A DNA stretch of 64,000 nt from Lepidodermella squamata (Eukaryota; Animalia; Gastrotricha), in contig JBLDXI010000064.1 of assembly GCA_047495785.1 (NCBI GenBank), positions 682,001-746,000 on the forward strand, in the 5' to 3' direction. Below, piece after piece: positions 21,513-54,358 of the stretch. Position numbers and translations under genes: made by a program. How positions within the stretch are numbered: the first letter of the stretch is position 1; each line of letters begins with the position of its first letter. The notes beneath the pieces were generated by a model that did no database searches, was not told where the DNA came from, and saw nothing but the letters and a program-made list of their open reading frames with translations.

Positions 21513-23356
21513 TCTACATCAAAGCTACCTATTTATTGTTGATCGAGAAAACATTTAGCCTAGTGGCTTCTATTTCTCTTGCAATAAATAATAGGTTAAA
21601 AATATGCGCCCGCACAAGAGGCCGCATTTGCATAATATATGCACACACTAATAATAATAATAGTATAACGCCGACTGAAAATCGTTTAAATAGCTGTAGC
21701 TTAACCCCAGATGGTCCAAGTGCATCAATTTTTACATATTCTTCATCCTCGCATCAAGACGGTCATTTTGATACCGGTTTCGAGGCTAAATTCGACAAAT
21801 TAAGAAAATTTGTTTTCCCATGTGGGTATAGCATGGTTAAGCAACATTACTGCACGGCGCCGACGATGGCCATCTGTAGCGCGCTGTCCTGTGTCATCAT
21901 GTCCTTCGCCCCGTTTCCAGTGATGAGTGTTCAACAGCTGGCGCTAATCGACAGCAGCAACAGCAGCAGCAGCAGCAGCAATACGAATCCTGTACGCATA
22001 TGCGGGTTTTTCGTCAGCCGCCTCGCCGGCCCAGTCGACAGCCTGATCGTCGGAGTAGGACTTTTCATGTTCTATTCCCAGGCAGCTTGCTCAGGCTTGG
22101 CGTACAACTATTGGAAAGTTTTCAGAACTATCCGAACCGCTCGTTTGAGATTGCGAGGCGTCACTTCAATGGAAGACAAGTGGTATCGTAAAGAGTTGTT
22201 CATCGCCAAGCAGTCGCTAGCGGCTTTCCTCGTCTACTTCGCGTGCCATATGCCGCTGACAACGCACTTTCTCATGTCTCTTTTCTACCGCGAAGTTGGC
22301 CCCAGGCACGCAAGCGGCGACCTGCTCAAGTACAGCCTAATCTGCTTATTACTTGAGATGGTCCTTTCGGTCTTCATTAGGACACTGAAACCAGGGTTCT
22401 ACGATCGCATGAATTCAGCAATCATTACTCGATTAGGTGCAACGTGTCGCACATTCAGTCTGCTGAAAGCAGCTCGACTACGCATCAGCCCGTCTTAAAA
22501 TATCCACTTGAAAAATGAATGAAAAATGAACGCATGCTATGAGGATTTTGTAAACCTTATTGATGCGCTGGAACATGTTCACAGTTTTCTGTTGACTGAT
22601 TGATCGAGTCATTGAACAGAATACTACTTTTTTAAGCAAACGATTGGTTGTTACAAACAATTTTTTGGTAGTTTCTCGCGAGTGAAAATTATTGTGTTGC
22701 ATTGGTGAAAATTACATGACATTGTTACCAATAATGCGAGCGAAACGAGAAAAGTTTGAGGATTTTCAACTAGAAAAGGCTTCGAAATCACCTAAAAATG
22801 AGGTTACAGCAGTCGCATTCAGGCGATACTTCGATTTCGGTTGTTAAATTTGGTCCGATTGGTTGTTACATTTTAACATGTGTAACATGCTTAAAAAACA
22901 CTGTATTAAGTATTGCGCATATTCAGGTCGCCAAGGACTTCGAAGACGAGTGAAAAACGAGCAAGCGGAGCGAGGCGCAGCCGAGTGGTGCGCGAGTATT
23001 TCAAGAGTTTTCTCCCGGTTTTTAGTTGCCTCAGTTTTGTGAATTGTGAAACCTTATCTCTGCATCTTGAAGGCTGACGGAGCAATGACAGGTAATGACA
23101 GCACTAAGTTTTTGTGCGGATAAATAACGAATTTTCAATGTCTCAGCTATGAAAAATGTCTCCGGACGGATGACACCCACGGGTCCCCTCGTCATTTCAT
23201 ATTGTGTCGACATAACCGGTATGCGGTACAGACGATTGAATAATCTTCAGCACAATGCAGCAGTATAGAACGGAAACATAAAGCTTTTCAAAAAAGCAGA
23301 TCTGCTATCAGCTATCAACTATCAACAGTGTAAAGCTCACATTCCAAATCCAACAG

Positions 23357-32628: not shown

Positions 32629-33141
32629 ATGAACGACAGCATTCTTTATCGGGCAGTGGCAGCTCAATCGAAGCTAGCAGCAGCAGCAGCAGTTTTGCTG
32701 CCTGGCGGGGCTTGGATTGCGGCTGATATCGAAGACCGCGGCTTCAATGGCTCGCGGCCGTACTTCATCGGCTATTTCCACGACCTGAGCAGGCCCTCGA
32801 TCGAAGGTCGACTGCCGTATACACTGACCATTGTCATAACAGCTGTCTTAGCGATCGCAGCCACCATCGCTAACTTGGTTGCCTACTACAAACGCGGCGT
32901 CAACAGCAGTTTCATCATGTTGTGCTGCTTGCTCGCTGCTAGCAATATCATTTACGCCCTGAATAGTTGCGTAGGCATGCTGATCCCTTTGCGAACTGGC
33001 TACTGGGAAGCCGGCCCGGTCGCTTGTTCGCTCATGTACTGGATTACGAGTTCGGTCGGGGCTTTTGGCAATTTCGTCTACTTTCTCATCAGCTACGAAC
33101 GCCGTCTCTGCGTCACCTCGGCTAGCATGTATCGATCCAGT
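32629..33141 (+). pseudogene. 7TM receptor copy C2: exon 1 truncated at the Helitron-like junction; exons 2-3 not found downstream
   Basis: Homology to 60929-61435 ends at MYRSS (33141), three codons before the conserved splice donor, and is followed by A7 and unrelated sequence. Confidence 0.8.
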
Positions 33142-33498
33142 AAAAAAACCATGCTAGGACATGAATGTGGTTCATTTTGGCAGCTTTGCGCTGAGCATAA
33201 AAGGTTTCACAAAGGTTCCACTCAACTACCCCTTGGAACTCCCCTCCTAGCCATCTTGGAGGGGAACGTTTTTCGCCCCTCCCCAATGATATTATATTCT
33301 CTTTACAATGACAGCAACCGGAATCGATGTATTGGTGAATCTTTGCACATGCACCTGCCCTCACCTTGATTACCCTCAATATAATGTCATTGGGCAAAAA
33401 CAGTGATTTGCATTTTATTATATCGAAAAAAGCTGAAAACGGTGAGACAGGCTTAAAATGTCATTTGAACCATGAAAACCCGAAATCGGCGAGACTTG

Positions 33499-36400
33499 TT
33501 ATTCGAATCGCACCTATATTATAGCAATTAAGAACATGAAGATCACAAGATGATGAACAAAAAACATACATCTCGGACATGAGCCAGTGGTGTTTCGTTG
33601 CCACGCCCGTTCGCCAGTTGCGTTACTTTCGCTTCGTTCAGCCGTCCAAAGGTGACAATGGCCAATCTCCGAAGGAAAGCTTGTCTCGCGCTTGTCTCGT
33701 CCACCTGATCGATGACAACTGCACGAACTTGCCATGGCAGAAGATCAGGTCTCAGAGCACGGTGGATGTCCCGCTCAAGTCGCATGCGAGCCTCATCCGA
33801 GGTAAAGCCATAGACTATGGCAAGCAATAGCCACTTGTCACCTCGGGTGAAGTTGGCGCCGTTACCATTATTGTGCTCCCTGAGACGCTCCTCGGCCGAA
33901 CGTTCAGTTTGCCCAATATAGGAAACATACGGGCGCGTTTCCGAAATCAGGTGGTAAACGACGCCCCAGTCAACGATTGGCACGACCGAATTTGTGACGT
34001 AGAAGACCGGGTCGGTGATGCTAACCACAGGCTGCCGGACGGTGAGGATGTCGAGTTGAGCCAATCGAGACATGATGGCGCGATCGTAGGGGTTGTCTTT
34101 TGTCAATATCGAATCGATCGCATTAGCCGTAGCTTGCTGGCTCGATGTGACAAAACCGACACGGTCCAAATTACGACACCGAGACACCATCACCAGCAGT
34201 TGCGCCTTTTCCCACATGCGCTGTGACCTGACGACATCGGACACCTGGATAACTACGCCCTCTTCGACAGTAGTGCCCATAATTCGGTGGACCGTCGTGC
34301 AAAGCTGAAAAAGAATGTGATTTTGAACATGTATATGAAGAGGCGTGAAAAATGTACGTAGTAGCGGAAGGGAAACTGAACTCGGCGGGCGCGTTTAGCA
34401 TCAAGGCCAACGATGATTGGCATCCCAGCATGTCGCGGGACTTGTATGAGAGGCCAAGTAGGATCCACAACAGCCGCAGCTCGCTGGCCCGGCGGAACAA
34501 GCCGAACAGTGACACGAGCCTGCCTATCCTTGATGTTGTCCGGGATAGCGACGACAATGGCAAGCTGACCTTGCGAGAACGTCTGCATGGGTTCGTTTGA
34601 TATGTTGTTGTAGGTCATGCAGAGCAGCTCGCCAACAAACAACGACAGCTTTCGAGGTTCAAGACAAATCTTATCGAGCTTCCTAATGAAATTCTGATTC
34701 GTCGTAGCCATGAAAGGCTGTGAACCCGATTGGAACTCGTCTATCGACTCACAGTCAACAACAGCAACCTGCCGGCGTTTTCTCGCAATGAACTCTTCGA
34801 TAACTTCTTTTTCAGCCGCCCGCGTGGTCACTATCCGAATCAAATTGTCAGGCGCTTCGTCCCAGCTGTTGTAAAAGCGAGCTCTTGCCAAGATCGTTTG
34901 GGACACCTCGTTACGCTGGATGTCATTTAGACTGGGCTGGCGTAAAAGGTCGAGGATGCCTTGAAGTTGAGGATCCTGCGCGGCTCTCACATAGTGCGAT
35001 AGCATCACAACGTCGAACGAAAACATCAGGCTGCTGGATACCCAAAACGGCCGACCCTGAGAAAAATAGAATAAAAAACATTACAAGTTGAAAAAATAAG
35101 CATACTTTGATTGGCTGCAGTTGCGCAAAGTCACCTAAACAGTTAGAATAGAAAACAAGTGTCAGAGAAATTAAAAAAAATAGCCGAAATGAACCTGTTG
35201 CAATGACAAGCTTGCCGCCGAATTTGAGGTCATTTCCCATTGTATATCGAAGTACAGCGTCGAGAAGGGCAAACATCTCCGCTGATACCAAACCGATTTC
35301 TTCAATGAAGAATACGTCTGTCCGGTAGATGAGCTGGGCTTTGACCGGGTCCCTGCCGAGCGCCATAATGCAGTCCTGAGACTCGAGAATAGCGTGCGAG
35401 TAAGTTGATGTGTTGACTCGCATTGGGAACACCAGGTGCAGGTGACGTCCGCCCAGTGAACGCGCTCGCTCCGAAGTCAGCGCCGTGAGACAAACGTTGT
35501 GACCTCTAGCCATTGCATAGAGAACAACTGTTTGAAGGAGATAGGTTTTTCCAGCACCCGGAGGACCGACGAAAACGGAATGATTAAACTTTGCTCGGTG
35601 TTGTTGCAAAAAATCGATTTTGCGTAGAGCGTGAGACAAAGCTTCACGTTGTTGGTCCAGCGAGGCATCAGTTTGACCTGGAAAAAGAGAATTTATCAAC
35701 AATGCAACATAGAATGTTTTAAATATAGAACCTGGCGATCGCTGAAGAACCGGTTGCCATTGAACAGGATTAGCGACACTGGCTTCGACGATATCAGCCA
35801 GCGGAGGGAGATCCAGTTTACCAGTAAGCTGTCCGTGTGTCACCTCGGCCAGGACTTCGCGGTAGAGCCTCTCAGCACTTTCGATCTGTTGAGATGCTCT
35901 GGCCTTCAAAATCACCGAAGAAATGGAGGGATAATCGGAATCCAGGCTTCCGGAAACGAAAAAGAAATCATGCAATATCGCACGAATTTTCTCGATGTAC
36001 ATTCCCAGCTTTTTCGCCGACACAGGCATCCAGGCCAGCTGTTCAAGGATAAGCCGGCGAAAAATGTTTTTCACTTCAGCCTCCAGGTTGGGAAACGTAT
36101 CGTTCGCTTCGTCATAGGTAACAAGGCCGACGTTCGCAAAATTTCGCCGCATGTCGCGAAATGCGATCGCCTGCAGTTCATTCTCCATCGAGCCAAGCGT
36201 CATAATACAATGGTAAAGAAACTTGAAGCGATTGTTCGGTGTGACGTTTGACGGAACGGTGACGGCGGCGACAGAATTAGTCGGCTTTACGTAGCGAGTC
36301 GTCATTTCAACATCACCTCTAGCTAACGCCATGAAAATGGCAAGCAGCGGTGCAACTGCTGGGTGATCTTGATCCTGTTTTAGCAGAAACTCCAAGCCGA

Positions 36401-39400
36401 GTTTGATGCTGCATTTGCGAACTTTATAGTGCCGACCGAGTGCGTCTATAAATGGAGATTTGGTTGGGTCTTCCAACAGCTCAGCTTTCTTGTCTGCTGG
36501 GACGAAAACAAAAACGCGATGAAAGATGTCGACGTTGTAGAAAATCAGCAATTCCGCTGGTCTGATGTTGAATCTTTCTGTTGCACCCGGTACAAGGTTG
36601 GATTCTCTGTACTCGCGAGCCAGCTGACACTGTTCAGGCGTGAATAACCGCCATGATTGAGCAAACTGGTATCGTGTCCTATTAGGATCGAATACAGCTC
36701 CGACGACACCTGTTGAAAAATGGCGAAAAGTCCATTAATAATTGTTTCATAATTGTAGCTAAAAATGAGTTGAAAATGTTTTGGAATAAATGGCGTGAAA
36801 AATTTTAAACGCTGGACCAAGCCATGGAGTTCAAATAAACTAATCTGTTACGTTTCGCCAAGTGAAGAAAGTTTTCTTCGAATGGTAAATGATCGTATTT
36901 ACTCCATTGTTAAATAACGGTGATTAGCTTGTTTTTACTTAAAAGTTTCATCGCGATTTTAAGAGAACTAAAACAATTAAATGCTGTTAACGTGGGTAAT
37001 TTGTGACTCATTCCCACCGTGATCAATTTTCTGTCTTACCGGATAGGATGCCTAGCCTTTATTCAGTGCCTGGGCGAATTTAATCGCGATGGAAAAAAAT
37101 GTGCAAATTTTTCGCGAAGAGTTTTCGTAATTGTTTCCGACCGAATTTGTTTGCTTTCCTGGCTGCTAACGACTTTGAACTCTAGGCTTCTCCGCGTTGG
37201 AAATTTGTCGAAACGCCATTTTTGGTGTTTTTTCATTATTTTTCAAGGTATTACTTGACAAATTTCCCCACACAAATTGCAGTATAATTATTAATTGATA
37301 GCTAAAAAATCGCCCGGGTGTCGCCCATTCTCTTTGCGCATCAAGAAATAATAACCAACGTCGAATCATCAACGGTAAAAATACGAAAAATCATCAAGGA
37401 AGCCTAGTTTCTACTATAAATTTGTTTTGAATTATTATTACTTTTATTATTTACCTGCCTTATACGTAGTAAAAATCACAGATAATATCATAACTTACAA
37501 TTTGTTCAAATTAATCGTGAAATAAGAGCAAATTTGGAGAACGCATTTTTAGCCAATTAATCCTCGAAATTTAATTTGGCTCCGCAATTTGGTTCCACTG
37601 AAATAATTTTACGGCAACTTTTCGTAGGAAAACAGCCAACATTCAATAAACCAGAAGTAAAAAAATTGAAAACTACTGGGCAAATTTCTCACGTGGAAGT
37701 GATGAAGCAAGCGATTTTTTCAAAAAAGTTAAATTTGAATTTGAAGGCGTCGCTAATTTTTAAAAAAAATTCTCAGCAATTAATTATGCCGGGGCGCGAT
37801 TAATAAGCTCAGGAATCCGATCCGGTTTCACGGAAAGTTTCAATGCCTCTCGAAATAAGTTACAAAAAGAAATGAAATATAACAAGGATTTTAGCTTGCT
37901 TTTGCATTTCGTTTTCGTTTTCATTTTCGTTTCTTGAGACTTTTGTGACTCTGTGAGAAGCATTGACATTTTCCGTTAAACCGGATAGAATTCCTGAGCT
38001 TTATCCGTGACTTGGATTTATTGTGGATTTATATATTGTGAAAATTAACCTTGAAAATTAGAGAAGCCATTAAATTATAAATGTCCTGGAAAATCGCTTG
38101 CTTCATCAATGAGTACTCGCGGCTGTTAACGTGAGAAATTTCGAGGATCTATATTTGACCAAAAATGCGTTTTCTAAATTTGCTCTTAATTAACGCAAAA
38201 CTACTGTAATTATAAAAAATTGAAATAAATGGTAGTTAAGGTCTCCGTGATTTTCAGTATGAGGCATGGCCACGGCTTTAAGGACTAAGTACAGTAATAA
38301 AAGAATAAAATAATATGAATAATAATTATAGGTACTACCGGGTGTTCCATTAGTAACGCAAGCAAAGAAAATACACGGAAAAGGGATCAGAAACGGTAAA
38401 ATACGGGGCCTCCTTTTCGCGGAACCAAATTTTAGAAATTTCTAGTAGCCTGAAATCGCTTTTTGGATAGCACTTGGAAGCCAAGATTGGCCACAATAAT
38501 TGTAAACAATTCAGTAATGAATTAGGCGCAAAATTATCTATAATGCGAAGTGTTCAGTTAAAAAATAATGCTTAGCCCAATTTTCATAGAAATATTCAAA
38601 AAATGAATTTTTGCATATTTCGACTTTGGTTCTGCAAAGAAAACAATTTGGTTCCGCTACGGCATATTTGGTTCCGCAATAGCAAATTAGGTTCCGCTCA
38701 CCGTAGATTTGATTCCGCCAAAAGATATTCCGATTTAAATACGAGTCAATTCAAGAAATACAAAGATTTAAATAAATCCCAATAAGTTCCGAAGTTTGAC
38801 TGGGGCATGAATTTTATGGGCATTTTTCTCAGGCAAGAACAACATGATCAGATGAAACTGGAAATAGAAAGCGAACCTGGTTGTAACGTGGAGCGCTGGT
38901 TCTTCGATTTGTATGCCAAACGCAGCTCTGGTGGCTGAGTGTTGGTGTGAATGTACTCCACGTTCGTATAGGTATACGGATAGCCAGATATAAACCAATG
39001 TTGCTCCGTTGCAGCAATCTCCATAACGTTAGTTTGCTTCACCCGCCGAATGTTTTCCTCGAATTTGCGCACACTAGTGATCTTGGTATTCGGCAAAGGG
39101 CCATCAGCGACTGTTGCCTCGACTTGACCAGGAACAGCAGTGCCTTTGAAATGGGGATTGTAACGAACTTCCTTTCCACTCACGTACTTCACGAGATAGC
39201 TGACCAGGAACCGCTCATCACATGCCTGAACATTTGTGGAACTCCTCATTAAGACGGCGAGCAATGGAATGGTGGGCAAGAACTTCTTTCCTGCAATGAG
39301 ATGTCTAATTGGGTAATGATGAACCCCGGCCCTGAGCTTCTCGTGGCACAATTTCCATTCAAATTCGCCATCTTTTCCCGTCGGAACACGTTCGGCTAGT

Positions 39401-42400
39401 CCCACGGATTCCAGAGTTTCATACGTCGCGTCGTCATAGATATTTTTCTTCTCTTCATAAAAATACTCCTCGCTTCGTGGATGAGCTCGTACCCGGCACA
39501 TCATCACCCCATCTTCGCCACGGGGCTTCATACAGCGCTCACCGGCAGCTTCGCAATCGTGGCAAGTAAGAATCTTCAGCGAGGCTTGCATGTCTTCGAA
39601 GTCATCATCGTCCTCGACAAGATCATCTGCCAACAGCATTTCCTTGGTAGAACGGAACTTTTCGGAGAAGAAAAGATCTGGATCCAGGCAAATGAGCTCA
39701 GCGACGTGTGGATCACCTGGTTTTTGAGAGACTGAGACTCCGCCGTGGACGTGGCATTTATTGCCCAACGAACCCTGACTCTGAAATTCAATCCTCGAAA
39801 AATGAGTGTTGACTTTTCCGAGAATTTCTGATGGACTTTTCTCGAGGAAACGTACAACGTGATATATGGTGCGCTGCCAGACCATGTTAATGATGAAAAA
39901 GTTGTTCTCGTAAATCTGCCTATACAAGTCATTGTCAAGGATGAGTGAATCGACTTGCCGCTGCTTCAACGAATAATCGACCTTGAAATTAGTAGCGTCA
40001 TCTGCTGGTATTCGCATTTGAGAGGCTATCTTAAGGCGATTGATGAAAGGCCGGAGACCAGGTGAACCACGTTCATTGGCTGCAAACACAAAAAATTAGC
40101 AGTGACTCAATTGTTAATTTTATTAAGGCATACCGGTAAAGGTATAAAACAATGACCATGGGGCGAGTTTCATAGACGCAGCCAATTCCTTGATTTTACG
40201 AGACGAGTCGAAGTCGTCATATTCGAGCTTGGTTTGCACCGAATCGACTCCGAAACCTCCTTCGTCACTGATAAATTCAAAGCCTCGCCGGAAAAGCAAT
40301 GTGGAGCTGTGATGATTCAGACGTTCGTTGGCAGAAATGTCGAAAGCGAGACTCACTGCGTCCCAAGAATGTGACGTAGCAAGATCGCCATCGGCCAGCC
40401 GAACCCTGTTGTGTGCATCGAGGCTTGCGATTCCTACGAACTGGTTTGAATCTGGAGCGCAGTAAAGGTGATGAGGCAATGCGCCGAGTATAGAACCCTT
40501 GAAGTTTTTATAATAGATAGAAGGAAGGAGATTTGCGTCGGGGTACATCAACGACGCAGCAGGGGCACCGCCAGTTCGAACCATCTGCTGCATCGCGTAG
40601 TGCGACTTCTTAGAGGAGAACTGAGCTAGCTTTCGTTCAAGGATTCGAAAATAAAAGGTCAGCATATATTTGCTAGGAATTCCCGTTCGAGAGGTGCAGA
40701 ATTTGACCATATCAGAGACGGATATGGCTTGATCTGTCGGCTGATCAAGATACACGTCATCTGGCAGGGCTGATCCTTCAACCCAAACAGGATCCTCATG
40801 CTCAGGCTCATCTATTTCAGGCTCACCTCGAAGCCGCCTTTGTTGCTCCAAGGTCATTTCGAGTTCATCTTGCGGTTCAGCTTGCAGTAAAGCCTGGGAG
40901 CAGTTTCGCATAGCATTAGGCACGGAGTTACCGCCATTAGTACACAATTCTTCCGCCTCAGGGATATTCGTAAGTGGCTCCAAGAAAGTAGTTGGTGGCT
41001 CTATTGGTGTCGAACGATCAGTTGGCAGGTTTTTCAGGCAACGCTTGCATATACCAACGGTACATAACCGACCCAGGTGCATTCCTTCAGGGCAACGGAG
41101 CAAAGCAGGCCGTCCACATTGCCGAGGCGGGCCACGTCGGCCAGCTGGAACGTAGGCGCAACATTTCGTAGCCAAGTCCAACGGCACCTCAGTCAAGCCG
41201 TGCCCGTCGTGATGTTGAACGTGAAGTGAACAAACTGCAACTCGCTGACCACCAAGCGCGGATAAAACTGCGTGATGTTGTGCTTTTTCATCGCCGGGTC
41301 GAGTGTAAATAGCGTAAACAACGGCGCCGGAAATGGCTGCGAGGTTGTTAATCTCTTGAACTCGTCCTTTCTGCGTCGTAGACCACCATCCCGAATAGTC
41401 ACCACCCCAGCGCATTAACGTCAAAAGATTATTCGGTAACTTATCTTTTGCTGGAGTTTCAACTAGCAGAAAGACTAATGAATGACTACCGAGCTTGAGC
41501 GGGAATTTATCAGGAATAATGGAATCAGATCCATAAGGTCGACAAAACAGGATGTCCGTCTTGGGTTGAAAATCTTGAAATAGGCGAACTTTTTCGAAGC
41601 GGCTGTTTGGTCGTATCATCGGCAAGGCGAGAACGCTGTTGTCCGCTGAAAATAAATGTGAAGATGCTACAAATAGAACGTAAGTGAAAGAGTTAGCTCC
41701 TAGGTGATTCCTATCAGGGTGATATACAGTGAAACATTGGTTTAGCGTCATGTACTGATTGGACTACTGAAACCTCGGAAACTATATTTGCCTTAAAATT
41801 CAAGATAAAATCGGGAACCAATCGATATTATCTGACTTCTGAATTTTTCAAGTAAACCGAGGGGATAGATTTTTTGCGATAAGTGACTTGTTTTGTCACA
41901 TTTGCTATTTTGCGCAGTTTCTGTTTTAGCGCCTTGCCAAAATTAATTTAACCGAAAATAGATGAAAAGTGGGGTCTGGTGATATTTTGATGTCGATCAG
42001 TACAACAAATAGGTTGATATTTATCAGGGTTGCAGAAAATTGGCTTCAAAGTTGACCAGTGATAATTTCTAATTTGGAAAAATGCGCGCTCAAAATATTT
42101 CAGTTTTCATCACAAGTATTAAAAATCCCTCGCGCAATAAATTCTAATTTCATGTTTTTTGCGCTTTCGACATCTCTAAGGTAATCTGAGGTAAGGAATT
42201 TGTCATACTGTCATATTTGTCATAAATTTCTCTAGTTTAATAAAAATCGTAAAAATCTGTTGAAAGCATTTACAGGCACGAAATAATTATTGACAATAGA
42301 ATCACATTTGATTACAACGGAATAAAATATCCGGCTAATTTATGAACTGATATAATTATTTTACCTCGTCTGCTCTGACTTCTTATCGCTCGCTGATTAG

Positions 42401-45400
42401 GTTCATCGGCCACTTGGAGATGTAATCGAAGATTAACAACACTGGCGCCAGACGTCTGAAGTTCATCACCACCAACAGCGGGACATAACTTGTTGAGTAA
42501 TTCAATCGCCCGGTCAGCAATATCTGGAATAAGGTCACCTGCAGCATTACGCAGTGAAGCGTCCCATAGGTGACGACCAGCGATACCGCAGTCAATTGAT
42601 AGCGGCAAATTTTGGAAAATCTTCGCAGTCATCTGGAACAGCTTAGAAACTGGAAGTTGACCCAAGGAAAATTGAGCAGTTGAAACGTAATTAGACAACG
42701 CGTTTCTATTGACAGCGCGGCAGTTGAGTAACACGTTCAAGACATGCCAGGTTAGAAGACACATCCTCTTATTTTTCGTTTTCGCACCGACAACGCGGAA
42801 AGCAAAAGGTATCATGCCGTATTCATCAGCTTTATGAACAGGGTTCACAATGAGTTCCTTTACAGAAATTTTGTTTTCGGCAAGAGGAGCTTGTTCTTGA
42901 ACCGGGGCAGTAGTCGGACCAGTCGCCTCTTTTCGCAAAATAGCCCACGAGTGATAAACATCCGAACGTTCCATGAAAGTTGAGCCGCCAATGGCTTCCT
43001 GAATTTCCGTCGTAAGGCGACGGTATTTTCCCCGAAAAGCTCGTTCCAGGTGGGAGACTTCTTCAATGCCAAATTTAGCAATCATACAACGCTTGATGTC
43101 AGGCCGTTCTGCCGCTGCCAACATCTGTGGTTCAATATCTTCGACATCAGCAACAACGTTTTCATTAGTGGGCGCGATACTGAAGGTGCTACAACCGTTG
43201 TAACCCCCAACAACAGCATAAACGGGAGTCGAAGAGGTACATTTCCCAATACGAGTTTTTCGAACCAAATTAGGCATGATTTGAACAGGGGCGACAACTT
43301 CAGGCGTCTGACGACATGTCGCGCTGTAAGTTGGGTTTTTCGGGATGTGTAGGAAACGCGACCGAAGCTCATTGCGGGAATGCCTGTCGCAAACCAGGAC
43401 ACAAAGGCCCTTCACCTTGTCGATTGCCATTCCACAATTTACCGACCAGCCGAAGTAATCACTGGTAACATTCGGATAGTCAGAACGGGCTGAAAGGAAC
43501 CAGCGATGATCGGAGTCTCCGATTCGCAGTCGAGTTAGGTGGTTGACGAGATGATTAGCAGGAATTTTCTGACAAAATTCCGGCCACGTCCAGCAACCCA
43601 GAGAGCATTTTACCGGCGGGCAGCACGTACTGTCCAATTCTCGCTTCAACGAACCTACAAACCAAAGAGGAAATAATAAAATCAAATTGTATACTTGAAA
43701 AAGCAATACCTGGGCTTCTGTAGGCTCGAGTCTCGAAACCGTCCAGATAGTCCGAGTGGTCGATAAAATAGGGCTCACCAGAGGTCATGAGATTATTTCC
43801 AGTGGTTTGGATTTCAACTGCCCACATATCACGCAGCCGTTGCGGAATTAAATTCGTGAGCTTGGAGCCATCTTCTCTGAATTTCGGGTCGAAGAATAGG
43901 CTATGAAGAATAGCCGCCCAAGCGTCTTCGAATTGGAGCTTTTTGTTGCAGCTTTTGGCCGATTTAGTCGACTGAACCTCGAGATAGCGTTCGCAAACCT
44001 CACAAAGTAGGGCGTTTTTAACAGTAGACCTCCGCTTTATAGCACCGTAATTTCCACCGCGCACTTCTTCAACACGGACAAATGGGAGAGGGTCTTTGGC
44101 CGTTGCAGTTCGTTTGCAAGAATCACACTGCGGCGCTGTTATAGAGAGAACGAGATTAAGAATTGAAATCTCCAAATGAGAATTTTGCCAACAGCACTTA
44201 TTAACCCAAACTATTTCAATTTGAAAATAGGATAATTTCGTTTGAAAATAGGAAAAACGAGATAAATGCAAATATTATTAGAGCCTAAAAATTCGATAAT
44301 CTGCACAGCTATAGAAATTTGGAATTAATTCGAGTATGAAGTATAGGTATAAGAAATATTGTGAGAAAATCAAATTTCATAATACTGGTTGAATGAAATA
44401 TCGCTCTCGATTTAGGGTGGAGATAGGAATTTTAGCCGCGCCAACTACAGTAGTTTTGCGTTAAGCCGGACTCGATCCGCGCCAGAAGATTTAGTCCGGC
44501 TTAATGAAAGTCCGCTTTATTGTAAGCCGGACTGGTCCGGTTTATAAAAAAAACAGTGCATTTCTTTACAAATTATTCAAGAATATAAGCGCTATTAAGT
44601 AATGCGCTATTTAGGTGTGTAAAAAGTTCTATTATCGCGATGGAATCAAGGTTTTGCCATATATCGACAAATTATTTTTCAATACTGCGATCATTTTTGC
44701 TATCAAAGCCACTCAAAAACAGCGTAAAGAGGGTGTTTCTGCGCTCTAGATGAAAATGATCCTGTAAGCCGGACTTTTTTGAGTTAAATTCACTAAAAAT
44801 CAGTCCGTTATAACGCAAGTCCGCCTTATGACAGTCCGGCTTATTGCAACCATTTGCATGTAAAACGCTAGTCCGCGGCACGAGCCAAGCAAAATGGTCC
44901 GGCTAAGCGCAAGTCCGGCTTATGATCGTCCGGCTTAACGCAAAACTACTGTATTTATTGAAATTTAGAGAAGTTCGACCTCAGGGCTGGAAAAAGTGTC
45001 CTATCACAAGATGTGCTTTCGGGCCAAAATTAGCGGATATTTCCGAGTCTCGATATGCCTGATGAATTACAGGGAACTTCCTAACAGAGAATTCGCTTGA
45101 TACCGAAGTTTAAAAGGTGGCTTGTACTTTTTTCCATTTCCAGAAAAATAAATTGCCGCAAAGGTAATGGTGTTGAGATCTTGGGAAGAATCTTCCACCG
45201 CGCTTTATTTCGCTCGTGCCTGATAAATCGGTGAATTAATATAGTAATTTTTGGACCATATTTTCTTCTTCAGAAAATGTTTCTTTTTCCCCGAAAAATA
45301 TTTTGTTAATCAAAAACCACGACTAGCATCTGTTTCACGGAGTATATTTATAGTGTATTTGTGTTGGCGTAGTAGCCATTAAATTAAAATTTGGCATATA

Positions 45401-48400
45401 CCGTACTGCCCGAAATTTTTGCCCTCTATTTTTCAAAAAAAGTCGCAGCCCCGTCTTATATTTGAGACCGCCATCTATTTGAGGTCTGACCTTTATTATT
45501 TCGAACCCTTTTTAACTCATCAGATGCCGCGAGTTAATGTTTTTTCGTCAGCTAATTCCACGTTTTGTCAGCTAATTCCAGTTTTCGTCAGAAATACCAT
45601 TTTCTGTCAGAAATGACACTTTTTAACAGCTAATTTAACATTTAATTACTAATTATGATTATAATTATATACTGTTCTCAATTTTCACGTGAATAGCGCA
45701 GCGCGGAAATTCTTTGATTTCTTAAATATTGCTGGTGCTATATTTTCGATCATAAATCCCTAGCTAAACCTGAGTGGAACCCATTTCGACCTTTTTTCGC
45801 GAGAAAAATTTCGCAAAAGTGCGCCCCCAGTTCCATAATCCACAAAGATTTCACCTCAGCTTCTGGCGCGTAGTCGCGAGTTTTCACCGTGAACTGTCCC
45901 TACTATTTTTTAGTGAATTTTTTTCAAGTTAATCCCAGGCGAGACAGTCACGTCTTCAATTGTAAACAGCATGTGACTTGATTTTCAAGGTATCCTATCC
46001 ATATTTTGTTGATATTTCTTTACCGTTCTGGTAACAGTAGTGTTATCGTAGTTTTTCTGTAGTTTTACCGTAGTGCCACGGAAAAACTACGGTAGCAATC
46101 GTTTATAGGTATTTACTACCAAAATGTGCTACTAAGACGTCGTGCGATTAAAAATCCGAAAGCATATTAGAGCCAATAATTTTGAAAAAAAAATGTCAAC
46201 ATTTTCCTACGTTATTTTCGTGAAAATGGGCAGGAAATAGAGTTACAGAGCACTAATAAATTAAAATTAAAATTAAATATTAAATTAGCTGTAAAAAAGT
46301 GTCATTTCTGACAGAAAATGGTATTTCTGACGAAAACTGGAATTAGCTGACAAAACATGGAATTAGCTGACGAAAAAATATTACACCCGATGCCGCTAAA
46401 CAACACTTCCGGTCCCTAAGAATTGGCCAGTTGATTATGAAGACGCTGTAGTAGAATTCGAATTCCTTTAAAATATAAATATTTTTAAATATTCTAAATA
46501 TTTTAAATATTTTGAAATTTAAAAAAATAATGATAAAAGCGTGACCGGAGGCCTGATCTTTATCATTTCGAATGACCCTTGAACCCCGTCTTATATTTAA
46601 GGCTGACTAAATTTTCGGGCAAAACGGCCAAACGGTAATTTCCTTTTCTGGCAGAAAAAATATCGGAATATATTTTAGCGGAACCAAATTCGAAATATGC
46701 CAAGAGTCAGTTTTGCATATTTCTACGAATTGAACATTCCGTCTTATAGAGAATATTGCGCTTAATTCACTGGTGAATTTTCGGGAATCATTAGTGCTAA
46801 TAGTGATTTCAGGCCACTAGAAAAGTCCACAAACTACAAATTTACGCTAGCAAGAGGACCGAAAAAATATGATTTCTGGAAAAAAATGTCTGCTAAATAT
46901 TCGGCTAAAATGAAAAAAATTCTAACAATAACATATTCTGGCAATAAAAGAATTCTTCCAATTTTCCACGAACTCAAAAAATCATGAACTAGACACGAAA
47001 GAAAATAATAGCTGCGACCCCTCGAGTTTCGTCACGATGGCATAGGTGTCTGAGTTGGAAATATACTCATATTCATAAATCAAATTGTTGTGTAACTGCA
47101 AAATTGCGCGAAAGGTTTGTTCATTTTTTCAAATAACGGGTGAATATATACCTACCTCATTTAATTAGAAATTCGAACATATCTGTTCGGAGAATTGTTC
47201 TATTTATGTGATTCAAGAAGTGCTCCTTTTATCGGAACAAAATTGACAGTGAGCAGAACTTTTCTACAGGCCTGAAATCGCTTTTCAGATACTTTCTTGG
47301 TCTCAAAATTAACACGATAATTATTCTTAAAAAAAACACCAGTAAATTCAGCGTAACATTACTTGAACAATGGCGAATTTTTGCCAGAAAAGTATTTTTT
47401 TCAATAAAATATTTCAATCTTCAGAAATTAATTCAGAAATTCAATCTGCAGAAATAAAGAGATAAGAATATTAAATTTCATTTCGGATATTTAAGGGAAA
47501 AAAGCACTGCTGGCTTTTGGACACTCTCATTAGACTGGCTCGATCTAAAAAATTCGGCTAATGAGTGAATTAATAAGCAGATATTGAGAAGTGAGATTTT
47601 TAACCATTGCGATTTTGATTGATAAATAATCTAGCAGCTTTTAAACCCTAAAATATTTAACAGTCTAATTAATTTCAAAGCGAAGTATTTGTCGAGTCTA
47701 ATAAGAGGGTTGAGGTGCCATAATAGCTTAATTTGGGCTGTATCCGAGATGTTTAAAAAACGCTTAAAAAGCGGGATTTTTGTAGAGCGAGGAAAATTTC
47801 CCTCGATTTCATTCTTGAACCAAAAATATGGGATTTTATAAAACAAAATTAACGGGAATTCGAATTTTTACAACGGTAAAAAAGACTTACTCGACTCGCT
47901 GGCATTTTTAGTTGCTGTAGCTGACGGCGGAACAGGCTCGTGTGAAACTTCACGGCTTTTCCGAGCTCGCCTACGCTTCTTCGCCCTGGTGCTGATGGCC
48001 GGAGCAGACGGCTGAGACGGCGACATCGATGGACTAGTTGCAGACGGTGGAATGCTGTTCACCGCTTCATGACTTGAAGCTGGTTGGACACCGGCCGCGG
48101 ATCTTGGAGCCGGAATTTCCATCGGGCTGCTAATTGAGCATTGATCTGGTCTTTCAGGTTCGGAACGTAACAGTGGTAACAGAGCAACATAGTGCCCACT
48201 GCCGTCGTACGCAATGTGAATAACAGCCGGGCCATTTCCGTAGGAGAATATGTTTCGGCTTCGAGCATCGAACAACTTCACAGTAACGTTAAGGCCATCA
48301 GCGACCGATAACAAGGAAATGTTATCGCCCCAGTCCCCGCCTTGTCTCGCAGGCATGCCGATACGCCGTGTCAACTCAGCCATGCTCGTACTAGGCAATG

Positions 48401-50288
48401 GCTGGCCGCAATTCCTCGCATTTCGCATCGTTAAAGGGTCGTAGGCCCACAGGTGGTCATAGGAGCCGGTAGAAAGGCGACTTTGTGCTAACCTCCGCAG
48501 CTGCATGAAATCATACACCATTCCGGCACGCCTGGCCGCGTCAGAAACTGCGTAAAATTGGCAATCGCCTTGGGCAGGGTTGTCGACAATTTCGAGTCTA
48601 TTAATTCGAGCTGCTTCCCTCAACCATTCGCCATCGGCAAGTGGTGGCAACGCAGCAGGAAGAATCAAGGTGACGTCAGGTAAAACTGCCGAGCAATCTA
48701 TGAAATAGGGCGTTATTCGACTGTTTTATAAAAGGATTGATTGAAAAATGCCGCTAATGCTCAGCAATAATTTGGTAAAATACCATAATTTATGGCATGT
48801 TTGCTCCTTTCAATCACGTCTTTTGGAGCATAAGTTCCTTAATTAAGAAAATTCCGTAAAGTTAATGAAGGCAGAGACTTAAATAAACCAACAATTTATT
48901 CCACAAAACTATTAGGTAAAAACTAGTATACTAGTATATTTAACATGTTTAAAAATTCTTTAATCTTATTCTTTCACATTTCCTAAATTTCCTCCTATTC
49001 AATATTTTCAATATTTTCTGATGCTCTGAAACCGATGGAACGTGACGCCTTAGATCTAAAAATTAATTGCCTGATGATTTTTAGTACTACTACAGCGTGT
49101 CCCAGAAGTGGCACAACTATTTTGTGAGAAATTCCAACAAAATTAGAATTAAACCTACCGATAGAATATTCCATTTTTATCCGCGATTCAACCGAAGCAA
49201 AATAAAAATTATTAGAAAATACTGGAAAAACCTGATGATACTGGTTTGGTAACATTTCTCCGGATTTTCCAATCCCATTAACAGTTTAGTCGAATCATCG
49301 CGATTTTTTTATTTTTTATAAAATTATCCTGATCATGGGATGTGACTTACTCTCCGCGTATTTTGTTTTTATTTCGTTAGCATGGGAAACACTACTAATA
49401 TCCTGTTTTCATTAATTTTTGGTTTTAGATATTTTCGGCCCTTTAATATCAATGGATTGATGGACTAATGGAACACGTAGTAATGCCATTAATGATAGCT
49501 TGAAACTCACTTGTAGCACTATCAGTCTCATTGTAGGCGGAAGCAGAATAGGGAAATGCGTCGCCTGCCAATTTTCTGGCAAAATCAGGTCCAGCGATGC
49601 CGATTCGACCAGACACAACATCAGCAAAAGACCGACGTTGATTTTGAGACCCTGGCTGAAAAGCTGGCGATTGTTGCGGTATAGTAGACGAAACGCCGCC
49701 GCTGCTGCCTTGAATGCCTGAATGCCAAATGTTATCAATTTCAAGTAAAATAATTCAGAAATTCAGAAAAAAGATGTGCCTTGTTCTGCTATTGCCACGA
49801 CGTTGACTAACCACTTTCCTTACTCGAGCAGCATGACCATAATAATTAATTAATATAAAATTATATTAAAATAGTGGTATTTTATATATTATAAAATTAT
49901 ATAAAAAACGATAGTATTTGGCCTAATTTCATGTACTAAACACTAGAAATCGAATACCTAAGTATATCTGAAATTTCTTTTACGAATATTATTGATTACA
50001 AATTAAAATACAACTATGATAACTTGAAATGATGTTAAAATAATTGTTTTAGAAAATTGCAATATCTTCCTAATTCTTACCAGAGGAAGAAGGTTCAGGA
50101 TTTTTTGCGGGCACTTGGTCACTCACAGATTGCGCGGCCGCAACAACTGGGCAACATCGTGCAGCATGGTGATTGTTACAATGGGAACAGTGAGTAGTTG
50201 CCTTGGCGCCAGTTTTTCCGCATTTCGAGCATGTCGGTGCCGTACCTTTCTTTGTTGTCAAACTATCGTCAAACGTGGTTCTTGGCAT
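33499..50288 (-). CDS. Rep-helicase polyprotein, about 2,860 aa, 13 exons: 50288-50081, 49717-49511, 48697-47891, 44135-43710, 43654-42365, 41645-40134, 40079-38877, 36709-35732, 35677-35195, 35134-35106, 35056-34358, 34304-33570, 33513-33499 (ZnF - OTU - Cys-rich - Rep - PIF1 - GIY-YIG)
   Basis: All junctions are GT-AG, in phase and stop-free. Splicing rebuilds Rep motif 1 LFYTFT|ANE, helicase IATG|DFAQLQPIK and FRYY|LCTTVHRIMG. Also present: RIEFQSQGSLGNKCHVHG (HUH), SYLVKYVS (Y2), GPPGAGKT, QLLVMVSR, GVVYHLIS..SYIGQT..ERLREHN (GIY-YIG) and GDCQFYAV...GHY (OTU). AATAAA at about 33414-33419 on the minus strand. Confidence 0.85.
37440..38320. mobile_element. Degenerate foldback/MITE in RepHel intron 7
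   Basis: Nested inverted blocks, e.g. 37520-37570 vs 38135-38190, 37700-37720 vs 38090-38108 and 37804-37850 vs 37955-38003; boundaries approximate. Confidence 0.55.
44448..44951. mobile_element. Tc1/mariner (pogo-like) MITE in RepHel intron 3
   Basis: Perfect TIR CAGTAGTTTTGCGTTAAGCCGGA at both ends; TA TSD at 44446-44447 and 44952-44953. Confidence 0.85.
45531..46388. mobile_element. MITE with about 120-bp TIRs and an 8-bp TSD (Mutator/Merlin-like), nested in an older element in RepHel intron 3
   Basis: TSD GATGCCGC at 45523-45530 and 46389-46396; TIRs contain repeated GTCAGCTAATTCCA units. Confidence 0.75.
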
Positions 50289-52141
50289 AGTAGCAGTAGT
50301 AGTAGTAGATGTGTTCGTAAAACGAAAAATCGAAAGTTAACAGGTGAAATATTTCTAAATTGGAAAAAGGTAAACATTTTCTCATTTAGTAATGACAATA
50401 TTATAGATTAAAAAACCCGGAATTTTTAGTCGGGTTTTTCTGCCGTCACAGGTGCATGGCCTTTACAAAACAAAAATATAGTTTATCGCAAGAAAAAAAC
50501 ACGGATAATTTGAGAAAAATAAAAAAAAATCACGAAAAAAGTCACTGTTGCAACCGGGTAAAATACCGAAAATAACTGAACCATCGGGGTCTTCCGAGTT
50601 TTCCCGGTTAATGTTTTTCTTCGGTTAAATCGCGTAAAAAATGGAGTAATTGCCATCTTTTACCATTCTGCTAGGTCCGACTGAAAACGGACTCCTGAGA
50701 GAAAATGAAGTCATTTTCCAGCTAGCTGCCTAAATGCACCCAGCCTAGTTAACAACTTAAGAAGCTTACATCAGCCAGAAGCAGAGTTCCCTATCTCAAA
50801 TTGAATTAGGTTTCCCCAAGACAGCGCGCTCAATACCGGCATCACGGGTGTCAAGCGTTTTCGCAGGGCTGTTAAATAGAAATAAAGTAAAAAAAATCAC
50901 ACTATCAGATCACGAACACATTGTTCACATACAGTTGTTCAGCGCCACGTGGCGCGTATTTTCTATGGCGTGTTATTTTTCATGATTTTTTGCCATATCT
51001 TTGTAGCGTCTTATTCATATTTTAACTCTACAGCTATTACTATTTACATGGCACAAAATCAAGCAAATAGCCACTATAAGGTAATAAAAGGATATAACAC
51101 GAAAGCCCCAGCTTTTGGCAATTTAGGTTAGTCGTTAATAAAATTGTCCGGGTCGCTGTTTATTTAGGTCACGATTGCACCAATAATCACCGCCATCAAA
51201 AGACCATGACTCTTTTATCATACACATAGAAATAAAGCGTACGAAGGCCAAGTGAACAAAAGCCAACTTTTATTGTTCAATATTCAGCTATTTTCACAAA
51301 CCAATGTTAACGGGTTTCAACAAATATTTCGACGCTTCATGACGTGATCACGAGAATTAACAAGATAATAGGATCATTATTTTTTCATCAGAATAATTCC
51401 GATTTTTTAGGTTGTTCAACGATAAATGCAAGTGTTAAAATTATTCCAAAAAAACCAAAAAATACACATTTGGAATAATTTGGAAAAATACCCTTTCCAG
51501 AAGAAACTATAGGTCCTTGACAAATATCAGGGTTGTGATCGAAATATAAGTGTAAATTTTCAATTTTGAATGCGAGAATATTCGAAATATTGCACATCAA
51601 TGTAGAAGAAAAGCTGGATAATTTTAAATATTTGTCAAATTCAAATTACCACTTAATGAATTTTTTAGACATTCCATCAAAAAATAGAAAAAAGTCATTT
51701 TATTTCTCTGAAGAATTGGTTAGCAGTAATATAGGAGGATAAAAGATGACCATCGAGGTATAGAATATAGAAAATACTAGCCGGAAACATACGCAGAAAA
51801 ATGCTAATTTTAAAATTGTCAACAAATTCAGAATTTTCGTGAAAACCTAAATCGAAAATTTATGGATTGAAAAATTAAAAAAAAATGAAAAAAAATATTA
51901 GGAAATGTACGTTTAAAATTCGTTTTCTGTTACAAAAAACGGCAGATACTGAAATTATTTCATGAAGGCAAACTATTTACAATATTGCAGCAAATATTCC
52001 ATACTTCTAATCAAAATATTGGTGCCAACGGCCACGCTTTATGAAGACAACTCATGACTATCAAGATATTATGCCAAATTTTACAAAATCAATGAAAATA
52101 ATATTTACACACAATATGTCCGTTTTATGAGTTTTGTTGAG

Positions 52142-54358
52142 TCAGGCGTCATCCACAGCATTGTTTACGGCGTTTTCAACTTCATCGTTCGCCGGGGCTA
52201 CGTCGAGGCCCTCGTTGTTGTTCCCGGCTAGAACGTCGCCGTTACCGTAGTCCAACGCGGCTTCGTTGATGTTGTTGTCATCGAAGATGTCAACGTTGTA
52301 GTTGTCGTTTGCATCCTGGTAGTTGTTGTCGTCCAGGATGTCAACGTGACCGTTGTCGAGGCCGTTAATGCCATGGTCATGGGCTTCAGGGTCATTTTGA
52401 GCATCGCCATTGTGGCCATTGGCTTGATTGGCGAATCTAGGAGCAGGTAGTTCGAACATGGGCAGCGGTGCCCCCAGCGGTACTAGTTTCGCGACGTGGG
52501 TCTTGTTGATGGTCGCGACATCCTCGCCCCCAGCTTTGGAAGACTTGACCCACAGGAGCAAGCGAAATCCTCCGACATGCGCCTCCATTGAGCGGATGAT
52601 ATGCTCGGCCACATCGTTCAAGTCGACATCCGTAATTTCGCCATGCATTATGGCTGATGGCACAAGCTGGCTCATCAGCTCGAATGAGTAGTACACCTCC
52701 ACGAGCAACTCGCCCAATTCATGACACGAAATCAATATCCCGGGAAGCCATCGCACCGTCACAAACCTTGGGCCAAGGCAATAGCAGCCGACACCATACC
52801 GGCCGTCGCAAGACTTTCGGCAGGCCTTCGAGAACACTACGTCGTTCACAAACAGCTGGGCAGCCGTAAATCGGTATGAAAAGAACCGTTCGCGCACCGG
52901 AACTCCGCCGGCTGGCAGCGGAACCGTGACTTGCATCACCGGGCGCTGGTTGCGAGTCGGGGCGATGCAGTCCGTGCTCAACACCTCCATCTCTCGCCAA
53001 TTTTCCTGAAGCATGGCCGGGCGGCTGAGGGCGACTACTGTACCGGGACTCAGTTCGTCGATGAAATGCATGGATAGACGGCCGAACTCGGAGTCGTTCA
53101 CTTTCACAACGAAAACGCTGTCATCCATGTCGACTCGCCTAAATAACAACGAAAATAAATTCAGATCAGAAAAAGCAGCGTCATATTTTCCTTCACAGCT
53201 TAACATAACGAGGATTTATTTCTTAATTTTCAACAAAACATTTTTCAATTTTCAAGTATTTTTTAAATAATTTTTAATTTTATTTGTTAATTTCGATAAT
53301 AAAAAACTATTCTAAAATGATAGTTAATAATTGTCTTTCCCTGCGTAATTTTTAAAAATTTTTAATAATTTCAAAAATTAATAATTAAATGCAAATAGGT
53401 AACGTGGCAGAAGTAGGTGGTATTCAAGAATATTTCATGCGTGAAACAAAATTCTCAGAAATTTTGAAAATTTTGAAAATATAAATAAAAATTACAATCG
53501 ACAACAAATTTTTTTTAATCCCAATAGCCAATCCCGGGAAAAATTGGAAAATGACAAGTAAATTAAAAAAAATAATCAGCAGCCACAGCAGCCAGCTGAA
53601 AGCTAAACAATTTCGTACAATTTGCTGGAACCACTGACTCGCGCTAAGCCCCATTTCAAAACTTACAGGTAATGAGTGATATCATGATGAATCCTATACG
53701 CCTCCTTCTATCGTATTGTTAAAAAACGAAGAAACCGAACTCACGTTAGGAAAATTAGGTACAAGTACGGGGAGTCATTTCGGCCTCCTCGTTGGCTCAT
53801 GCTGTTGCTGTTGCTGATTGTCGGACGCTTCGTGGTCTTCTCTGCTTTAAACCGCTTTATCGAAATAATAATGCCGAAAGTTGTCGTCCCCATTCGAGGG
53901 GCACGTGTTACCGCCTCCAACCGGATCAAACGAGCGCGCTCGATGGCGCGTAACGCTGTATCACGATCGTTGGCACGTAAATACCGCGAGATACAAGTCA
54001 AACTGTGGAAAATTTTATGTTGTATAGCAAGCAATTCTCCTTAATTTTGAAAGTGATATGTTAAATTATTTTAAATTCGAAAACCGTATCCGGGGGCGTA
54101 TAATTGTTACGAATGCTCAAACTGTAAAAAATTTCTCTAAATACCCGCTAATTGCCCACAGTGAGCCGAACACCAGCTTGCCAAAACTCAAGAGAATATT
54201 CAAATATTCAAAATGTCTCAAATATTCAAAATTTTCGATAAATTCAGGGCAAGACCTAAATATGATTTTAAATTGTGAATTTAGAAAAATTTCTGATATT
54301 TTCGCCATTTTGTTCTCTTCAATATAAATAGTAAAACTTACTCATCGGTTCTTGACAT
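52142..54358 (-). CDS. Helitron companion gene, 3 exons (54358-54342, 54002-53769, 53138-52142), 415 aa; putative OB-fold/Zn-ribbon ssDNA-binding protein with an acidic Asn/Asp tail
   Basis: GT-AG phase-2 junctions give an open 1248-nt frame starting MSRTDDLTCISRY. It has beta-rich segments (TTFGIIISIK, VFVVKV, LSPGTVVALSRP), a Cys cluster ACRKSCDGRYGVGCYC and a D/N-rich C-terminus. The functional call is inference. Confidence 0.65.

Follow-up and report, generated by a model that had tools for sequence, protein, structure and literature searches.

HUH nucleases cleave only single-stranded DNA, and PIF1-type helicases travel 5′-3′ on single-stranded DNA. To our knowledge, it is unsettled how Helitron-type elements open duplex donor or target DNA and how they handle the second strand, and Helraiser is the only Helitron transposase that we know to have been solved. 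Helentrons carry an apurinic/apyrimidinic (AP) endonuclease behind the helicase and were thought to solve both problems with it. Among cellular nucleases, SLX1 cuts flaps, forks and junctions, and requires SLX4 bound via the RING finger. The EN domain of group-2 Helitron-like elements is described in the HELIANO paper of 2024 (PMC11417382), where one sentence also reports a GIY-YIG domain besides the RepHel in HelenSM92, a group-2 family of Sphagnum magellanicum, and terms it "captured". Here, we analyzed a window of 64,000 nucleotides from the gastrotrich Lepidodermella squamata (contig JBLDXI010000064.1, positions 682,001 to 746,000), to which all coordinates below refer unless a relative is named. 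Positions 33543-34304 of its minus strand are probably the C-terminal exon of an apparently intact, intron-bearing gene for a Helitron-like rolling-circle transposase with a second nuclease, a GIY-YIG domain. Read on the minus strand, the gene starts near 48.7 kb (perhaps near 50.3 kb) and ends at 33,543. The predicted order of the protein is an OTU-like protease domain, a Cys-rich region, a HUH Rep domain with two tyrosines, a PIF1-type helicase, a 71-residue linker and a GIY-YIG domain of SLX1 type.

The minus-strand frame 34394-33546 is free of stops, and both the helicase end and the GIY-YIG domain lie inside it. An AG acceptor at 34306-34305 opens the last exon, with 34304 as the first coding base, and an in-frame TGA stands at 33545-33543. 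The translation from 34304 to 33546 contains, in this order, helicase motif V (TTVHRIMGTT, 34269-34298), helicase motif VI (QLLVMVSR, 34179-34202), the linker, the GIY motif (GVVYHLIS, 33942-33965), the YIG motif (YIGQT, 33906-33920), RLREHNNG (33864-33887), RMRLE (33774-33788) and a C-terminal tail of 75 residues. The family consensus for the two helicase motifs is TIHxxMGxT ... LLSR. The original prediction, made from the letters alone, had placed motif VI and the GIY-YIG motifs in one exon, about 70 residues apart; all the peptides it quoted are present in this frame, and the distance from motif VI to the GIY motif is 71 residues. Its exon start at 34304 is also borne out by the acceptor, but its 3′ end at a GT donor at 33569 is not. 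The last exon aligns in a single stretch with the C-termini of relatives of 2,000-2,990 residues, and the C-termini of the closest relatives fall within ~15 residues of the window TGA (P0001 aligned to residue 556 of 569, P0010 to 2518 of 2532), so the exon most simply runs to the TGA. An extra 3′ exon beyond the donor at 33569 was considered and is unnecessary, since the relatives finish at the same point as the window stop.

The GIY-YIG catalytic core was matched by Pfam at 33747-33962 (PF01541, E 9.2e-10, 39.1 bits against a curated cut-off of 22.6), as the original prediction had expected of a profile search. A match of this strength is far above chance. For the family, we aligned the window domain with 42 relatives, each only 25-41% identical to the window copy. 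In this 43-sequence alignment, G20, Y23, Y35, G37, T39, R46, H50, N51, G53, G55, T59, W64, F73 and E83 are each kept by at least 90% of the sequences. The Tyr, Arg, His and Glu that had been recognized as typical of these nucleases (Y23, Y35, R46, H50 and E83) are thus all among the conserved positions. The catalytic codons lie at 33954-33956 (Tyr), 33918-33920 (Tyr), 33885-33887 (Arg), 33873-33875 (His), 33870-33872 (Asn) and 33774-33776 (Glu).

A search of all solved structures with the 43-sequence profile gave SLX1 at the top (4XLG, 2.4e-16; 7CQ2, 1.5e-15; 6SEH, 3e-12), with Arabidopsis HIGLE (At-HIGLE, 7WME) at E 7.6e-13. After SLX1 came the bacterial UPF0213 family (1ZG2, 4.9e-8), with T4 endonuclease II marginal at 0.05. 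A UvrC or I-TevI type was ruled out, as neither was returned among solved structures at E up to 1. Of the types originally proposed (SLX1, UvrC or Penelope), SLX1 is therefore upheld by both the profile and the fold, and UvrC is discarded. By our count along the printed alignment, the window residues Y23, R46, H50 and E83 correspond to Y14, R36, H40 and E79 of Slx1. The Slx1 chains vary at two of the paired sites (F in 7CQ4 and Y in 7CQ2; Q in 4XLG and E in 7CQ2), and the changes in 7CQ4 and 4XLG are apparently active-site mutants made for crystallography.

The fold agrees with this assignment. The AlphaFold2 model built from the domain alignment reached a mean predicted local distance difference test (pLDDT) score of 88.5 and a predicted template modeling (pTM) score of 0.84. 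In this model, the folded nuclease module (33603-34010, minus strand) comprises the GIY-YIG core, a helix and a small beta/alpha C-terminal subdomain, and has no RING finger. Beta strands at residues 21-27, 34-39 and 64-71 form the three-stranded sheet of the alpha/beta GIY-YIG fold. The structural match that had been anticipated was obtained with Foldseek against the PDB, where chains of SLX1 or HIGLE take all of the first 11 places (probability 1.00, E 6e-5 to 9e-4). In the ESM Atlas, the nearest model belongs to a eukaryotic (diatom) GIY-YIG cluster (TM 0.69), and a vertebrate SLX1 is matched with a TM of 0.61 and a root-mean-square deviation of 2.6 Å over 113 residues. No Pfam match to SLX1_C or a RING finger was found in the last exon at E up to 1. 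Similarly, no set of zinc-finger cysteines is seen in the tail, which has a single Cys among its 75 residues, and no Cys past the core is conserved in the family alignment. The domain is SLX1-like by sequence and fold, yet it is not an SLX1 orthologue, because the RING/SLX1_C finger is missing. We regard the identity of the GIY-YIG domain and its fusion to the helicase as almost certainly real.

A phmmer search of 1.84 billion representative proteins with the last-exon peptide gave 294 matches at E<1e-3, of which 44 had E<1e-10. Most of the matches listed align over residues ~2-180, that is, the helicase end, the linker and the GIY-YIG domain, in one stretch, and many are proteins of 2,000-2,990 residues aligned at their C-terminus. 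When 19 full-length relatives were scanned singly, GIY-YIG was found in all 19, PIF1 in 17, Helitron_like_N in nine (E<=0.01) and OTU in three; in relative P0039, Helitron_like_N exceeds the curated cut-off. The combination of Rep, PIF1 and GIY-YIG that was to be looked for in proteomes is thus recovered, with GIY-YIG following the PIF1 helicase in frame within a Rep-helicase protein, at the position where Helentrons have their AP endonuclease, as originally proposed. Exo_endo_phos was detected by Pfam in none of the 19 relatives and in none of the window exons. The domain DUF6570 (PF20209) was likewise absent from the 19 relatives at E up to 0.01 and from the window exons at E up to 10. The presence of GIY-YIG in 19/19 and of Exo_endo_phos in 0/19 is in keeping with a nuclease of another fold having been recruited separately. 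In intronless relatives, the helicase-GIY-YIG fusion is encoded as one open reading frame (ORF).

Relatives with a named host come from the tunicate Styela clava (several paralogues) and from the ostracod Cyprideis torosa, the others from metagenome or run assemblies; one cluster at 90% identity has 165 members. In animal genomes, the relatives are annotated as "uncharacterized protein" or "ATP-dependent DNA helicase". The family is mobile, because four copies of the P0021 subfamily in one assembly are >99% identical over ~25.8 kb, three of them on different contigs (L002 717-26503, L003 727-26507, L004 755-26558 and L001 1-17032). These near-identical copies, which are probably active, share further ORFs, and ~9 kb lies downstream of the transposase gene. 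They have a sharp 3′ end, ...GTTTAGCCTCCAGCGCTAGGTGGTC, terminating in CGCTAGGTGGTC, and the same 12 nt, CGCTAGGTGGTC, directly precede the 5′ start GGGGCGCTATTCCC in the 25.8-kb copies. By eye, no terminal inverted repeat was noticed in L001-L004. The elements of this family are therefore giant and were mobile recently, their fusion is translated from a single ORF, and the GIY-YIG domain, in the helicase frame and with every catalytic residue kept, is fixed in this large mobile lineage. About 30 nt beyond the 3′ end, the flanks of all four copies have a GC-rich motif in common, a hint of target preference or of a terminal segment that varies. In the 25.8-kb relative, an ORF of 144 residues gave a weak match to a GDSL lipase (E 0.007).

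The window is colinear with relatives of ~2,500 residues from 48,626 down to 33,639 by tblastn. Splice junctions were predicted from the sequence, base by base, and verified by script. Five GT-AG introns join 41763-33543 into a single frame of 1,945 codons with one terminal stop, and the resulting 1,945 residues give one unbroken BLASTP alignment to P0154 (734-2382) and to P0010 of Styela clava (767-2518). Upstream of the last exon, on the same strand, an intron of 53 nt (34305-34357) is preceded by the helicase exon with domains 2A/2B (34358-35056), placed by tblastn to the relatives and by the single spliced frame. Next come an intron of 49 nt (35057-35105), a microexon of 29 nt with helicase motif III, GDFAQLQPIK (35106-35134), and an intron of 60 nt (35135-35194), the microexon and the 60-nt intron resting on the junction reading and the spliced frame. 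The exon at 35195-36709 holds the pre-helicase region and the N-terminal half of the helicase (PF05970 PIF1, E 6e-12), with Walker A at 35544-35567 (GPPGAGKT) and Walker B at 35292-35312 (FFIEEIG). The best solved relative of the helicase is Helraiser (7LCC, E 1.6e-7), cellular PIF1s standing behind at ~2e-4. A contig of run X1 differs from the window between 33304 and 35346 at five listed sites, of which three are in predicted introns (one in the 53-nt and two in the 49-nt intron) and two at synonymous third positions; over only five sites, this would be the pattern expected of real introns and a constrained frame.

The intron of 2,167 nt at 36710-38876 separates the helicase from Rep and contains MITE-like (miniature inverted-repeat transposable element) inverted repeats; the relatives span this gap with only 6-25 residues. 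The Rep exon, defined by the family alignment, lies at 38877-40079. It has the motifs RIEFQS (39778-39795), the HUH motif CHVHGG (39739-39756), SSTNVQACD (39217-39243) and the two-tyrosine motif SYLVKYVSGKE (39169-39201). Invariant or near-invariant in the family are FxTxTCN, RIEFQS...CHVHGG, H.C..RC...CR, SSTNVQACD and SYLVKYVSGKE. Rep motif I, FxTxTCN in the family, reads YTFTAN in the window, where it is split by an intron and complete after splicing. This intron (54 nt, 40080-40133) was placed by the junction reading and the spliced frame. Upstream of it, an open frame at 40134-41763 holds the conserved pre-Rep region and Rep motif I, as judged by tblastn and the family alignment; the 5′ boundary of this exon is not fixed. 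The family Rep profile had a sole significant match in the PDB, Helraiser (7LCC, E 6.3e-6), spanning the HUH and tyrosine regions.

Taken together, the exon with its GIY-YIG fusion is confirmed as originally observed, and the interpretation then given to it is partly supported. On these results, the GIY-YIG domain is likely to be an active nuclease that the element needs. Tethered to the helicase, it would act as a second nuclease, specific for a DNA structure or for double-stranded DNA, and would make the cuts that are beyond the HUH domain, as nucleases of the HUH type are restricted to single strands. The most likely cut would be in the opposite or displaced strand at a fork or flap, as the transposon strand peels off or inserts. 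Such a cut could give a 3′-OH for completing second-strand synthesis, or could remove a flap, and the domain would then be a functional stand-in for the Helentron AP endonuclease. The SLX1-type identity favors a structure-specific role but does not prove it. Because the RING finger is absent, the helicase tether presumably takes over the part of SLX4 in targeting and activation.

For the N-terminal part of the gene, Cys-rich exons were mapped at 42315-44274 (minus strand) by tblastn and blastp to P0154 and P0010; their junctions are ambiguous, and an open GT-AG solution exists for each join. The N-terminal exon at 47871-48725 has an OTU-like cysteine protease domain with GDCQF at 48555-48569 and GHYVA at 48183-48197. 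This exon matches the OTU domain of P0154 by BLASTP at E 2e-12, with GDC and GHY kept, and the P0154 domain is itself matched by PF02338 at E 8.6e-8. The window exon gave no direct Pfam match. In addition, a short ORF with an initial Met and a Cys/His knuckle (CSKCGK...HCSHC) lies at 50073-50336 on the minus strand; no similarity to the relatives was detected, and the transposase gene may have its first exon here. MITE-like units are found in the two long introns, at 45535-46383 (113-nt arms, 96%) and 44443-44956 (29 nt, 97%). Further MITE-like units lie at 37516-38195 and 37805-38001 (arms of 44 nt and 47 nt), and 20-nt subrepeats recur at 38645-38718.

An accessory ORF of 354 residues with a C..CDGRYG..C.C motif and an Asn/Asp-rich tail was found at 52142-53206 on the minus strand. 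Its homologue at L005 20770-21360 adjoins the gene of the closest full-length relative (E 2.5e-16), and the ORF probably belongs to the same element. A minimum span of 33,543-53,206 can thus be argued for the element. Neither Pfam nor a word-index homology search returned anything for the accessory ORF. By ESM features, it scores 0.93 against clusters of the POT1, CTC1 and MEIOB type of oligonucleotide/oligosaccharide-binding (OB) fold, a lead from which it may be an OB-fold single-strand-binding protein. The AlphaFold model from two sequences had a pLDDT of 36.7 and did not confirm the fold.

Across the window, two-exon paralogues of rhodopsin-type G protein-coupled receptors (GPCRs) are arrayed in tandem on the plus strand. 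Copies of exon 1 were mapped at 1477, 6554, 23345, 26436, 32692, 58547, 60881 and 63269, and copies of exon 2 at 2559, 22103, 24420, 27679, 30750 and 59571. The exon 1 at 32692-33153 lacks a following exon 2, and ~175-390 bp further on comes the transposase gene, in reverse orientation. Elsewhere in the array, the exon 1 at 6554-7018 is ~15 kb from the next exon 2 at 22103-22447, and there may be a second large insertion between 7018 and 22103. Contigs of run X1 cover the transposase gene at ~2x the depth of the flanking contigs, which fits a homozygous single copy or two copies. The same run contains a diverged paralogue, 86% identical over the GIY-YIG core.

Several results weigh against an intact transposase gene at this locus. 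On the window Rep exon, the Pfam model Helitron_like_N reached only E 0.033, under threshold, as the domain has diverged and is interrupted by an intron. The transposase stop is only ~175-390 bp from the GPCR exon, so that the copy may be 3′-truncated or immobile, and neither end of the element could be placed in the window by repeat scans, run contigs or the GPCR exon map. The search of public runs for the locus gave one DNA-type run and no RNA run, and the one DNA run has no sign of recent amplification of the subfamily. Moreover, the cleavage step proposed above is drawn by analogy from the known behavior of SLX1 and HUH nucleases. Some of these points would suit a domesticated host gene, an ex-transposase kept as a single-copy, immobile helicase-nuclease. 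A long open frame with preserved GT-AG introns, two large introns that had time to gather MITE-like inserts, five contig differences that are all intronic or synonymous, the lack of a near-identical second copy in the one DNA run and the annotation of the Styela clava relatives as ordinary LOC genes with isoforms all agree with such a fate. We nevertheless consider domestication unlikely: the gene sits in a tandem GPCR cluster beside an exon 1 without its exon 2, as an insertion would; the accessory ORF stands alongside it, as it does beside a distant relative; diverged paralogous copies are present in the same run; the family is multi-copy and recently mobile elsewhere; and all three catalytic modules for transposition are intact.

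The copy could instead be an inert relic, that is, an old, immobile and probably unexpressed insertion with a frame left open by chance and an idle GIY-YIG domain. At least 1,945 stop-free codons, splice sites that are all canonical, the integrity of every catalytic motif and a substitution pattern as under purifying selection (at five sites only) make this quite improbable, despite the lack of a matching RNA run, a 3′ end that abuts a GPCR exon with little room for terminal sequence where relatives have ~9 kb downstream of the gene, and the secondary insertions within introns of 2.2 kb and ~3.9 kb. Finally, the GIY-YIG domain might be a passenger, a fragment of a host SLX1-like gene caught in the element and without a role in transposition. 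Helitron-like elements often capture host gene fragments, which speaks for this explanation. So does the wording of the HELIANO main text, in which its single GIY-YIG case is called "captured" (PMC11417382). A passenger is scarcely credible here, however, as the position and the linker length are fixed across the lineage, the domain is present in 19/19 full-length members and in frame with the helicase in intronless relatives, and its catalytic residues hardly vary among sequences that share only 25-41% identity with the window copy. An apparently intact transposase gene with a second nuclease therefore remains our preferred reading of the locus.

Besides Helentrons, another widespread lineage has a fixed nuclease where Helentrons have their AP endonuclease, but of a different fold. 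This suggests that a second nuclease was selected more than once, and the substrates of the cellular relatives point to branched DNA. The domain might also be a naturally occurring SLX1-type nuclease that functions independently of the RING-SLX4 module. In practical terms, genes of ~2,500 residues annotated as "uncharacterized" or "helicase" in animal genomes could be recognized as transposases. A more far-reaching reading, which we hold to be doubtful, is that Rep-PIF1-GIY-YIG proteins form a third deep rolling-circle branch outside groups 1 and 2, made up of giant, multi-gene elements of ~20-26 kb. In such elements, the tethered SLX1-type nuclease would cut the second strand, so that excision or integration would pass through a double-strand or flap-resolved intermediate, independently of host replication. 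If true, this would be a mechanistically distinct mode of rolling-circle transposition.

Among the known systems, Penelope-like elements are similar in being mobile elements whose polymerase or transposase bears a GIY-YIG endonuclease. They are retroelements with a reverse transcriptase, whereas no reverse transcriptase family was matched by Pfam in any window exon. Among solved structures, the GIY-YIG domain described here matches SLX1 and UPF0213. Homology to Helraiser (group 1) is detectable in the Rep motifs and in the helicase. The Helraiser protein stops after the helicase, at 1,496 residues, whereas members of this family have ~2,300-2,900 residues, with ~1,100-1,500 extra N-terminal residues and a C-terminal nuclease.

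Toward group 2, a word-index search from the Rep-helicase core returned only one outside protein, P0186 (E 7.6e-6), and the P0186 set carries DUF6570, as in group-2 Helitron-like elements. By hhalign, the family and this DUF6570-bearing set align over the helicase region only (E 4e-27, 21% identity). P0186 and its relatives, of ~3,000 residues, have a well-conserved C-terminal extension of ~630 residues after the helicase, with the acidic motifs GIDQG..NFA, EQ and KLDDLGDALLHAL. A RuvC/Ydc2-like nuclease was suspected in this extension from its D/E motifs and was rejected, as neither Pfam nor PDB profiles gave support for it.

HelenSM92 is a Helitron-like element that has been reported with a GIY-YIG domain besides RepHel (PMC11417382); in our full-text search of the literature on Helitrons or Helentrons together with GIY-YIG or SLX1, this sentence was the sole relevant mention, the other co-mentions being unrelated. 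The main text of the HELIANO paper makes no link to SLX1, to an in-frame helicase fusion or to an animal-protist lineage (PMC11417382). The elements described here are thus a barely described variant of Helitron-like elements, of which the Lepidodermella locus is one apparently intact member.

SLX1 is the best profile and fold match of the domain and shares with it the pattern Y...YIG.T...RRL..HN.G...T....PW....V.GF......FE..W. The domain differs in being without the RING/SLX1_C finger and in being fused to a helicase rather than standing alone. Binding to SLX4 is not expected, given the absent finger and the single Cys of the tail. The overall likeness to Helentrons lies in a single long protein in which Rep (HUH, two tyrosines) is followed by a PIF1-type helicase and a C-terminal second nuclease, as well as in an OTU-type protease domain and possibly an upstream gene for a single-strand-binding protein. 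The window and its 19 relatives are set apart from Helentrons and other group-2 elements by the absence of Exo_endo_phos and of the group-2 marker DUF6570, and the second nuclease here is of the SLX1-type GIY-YIG fold instead of the AP/Exo_endo_phos fold.

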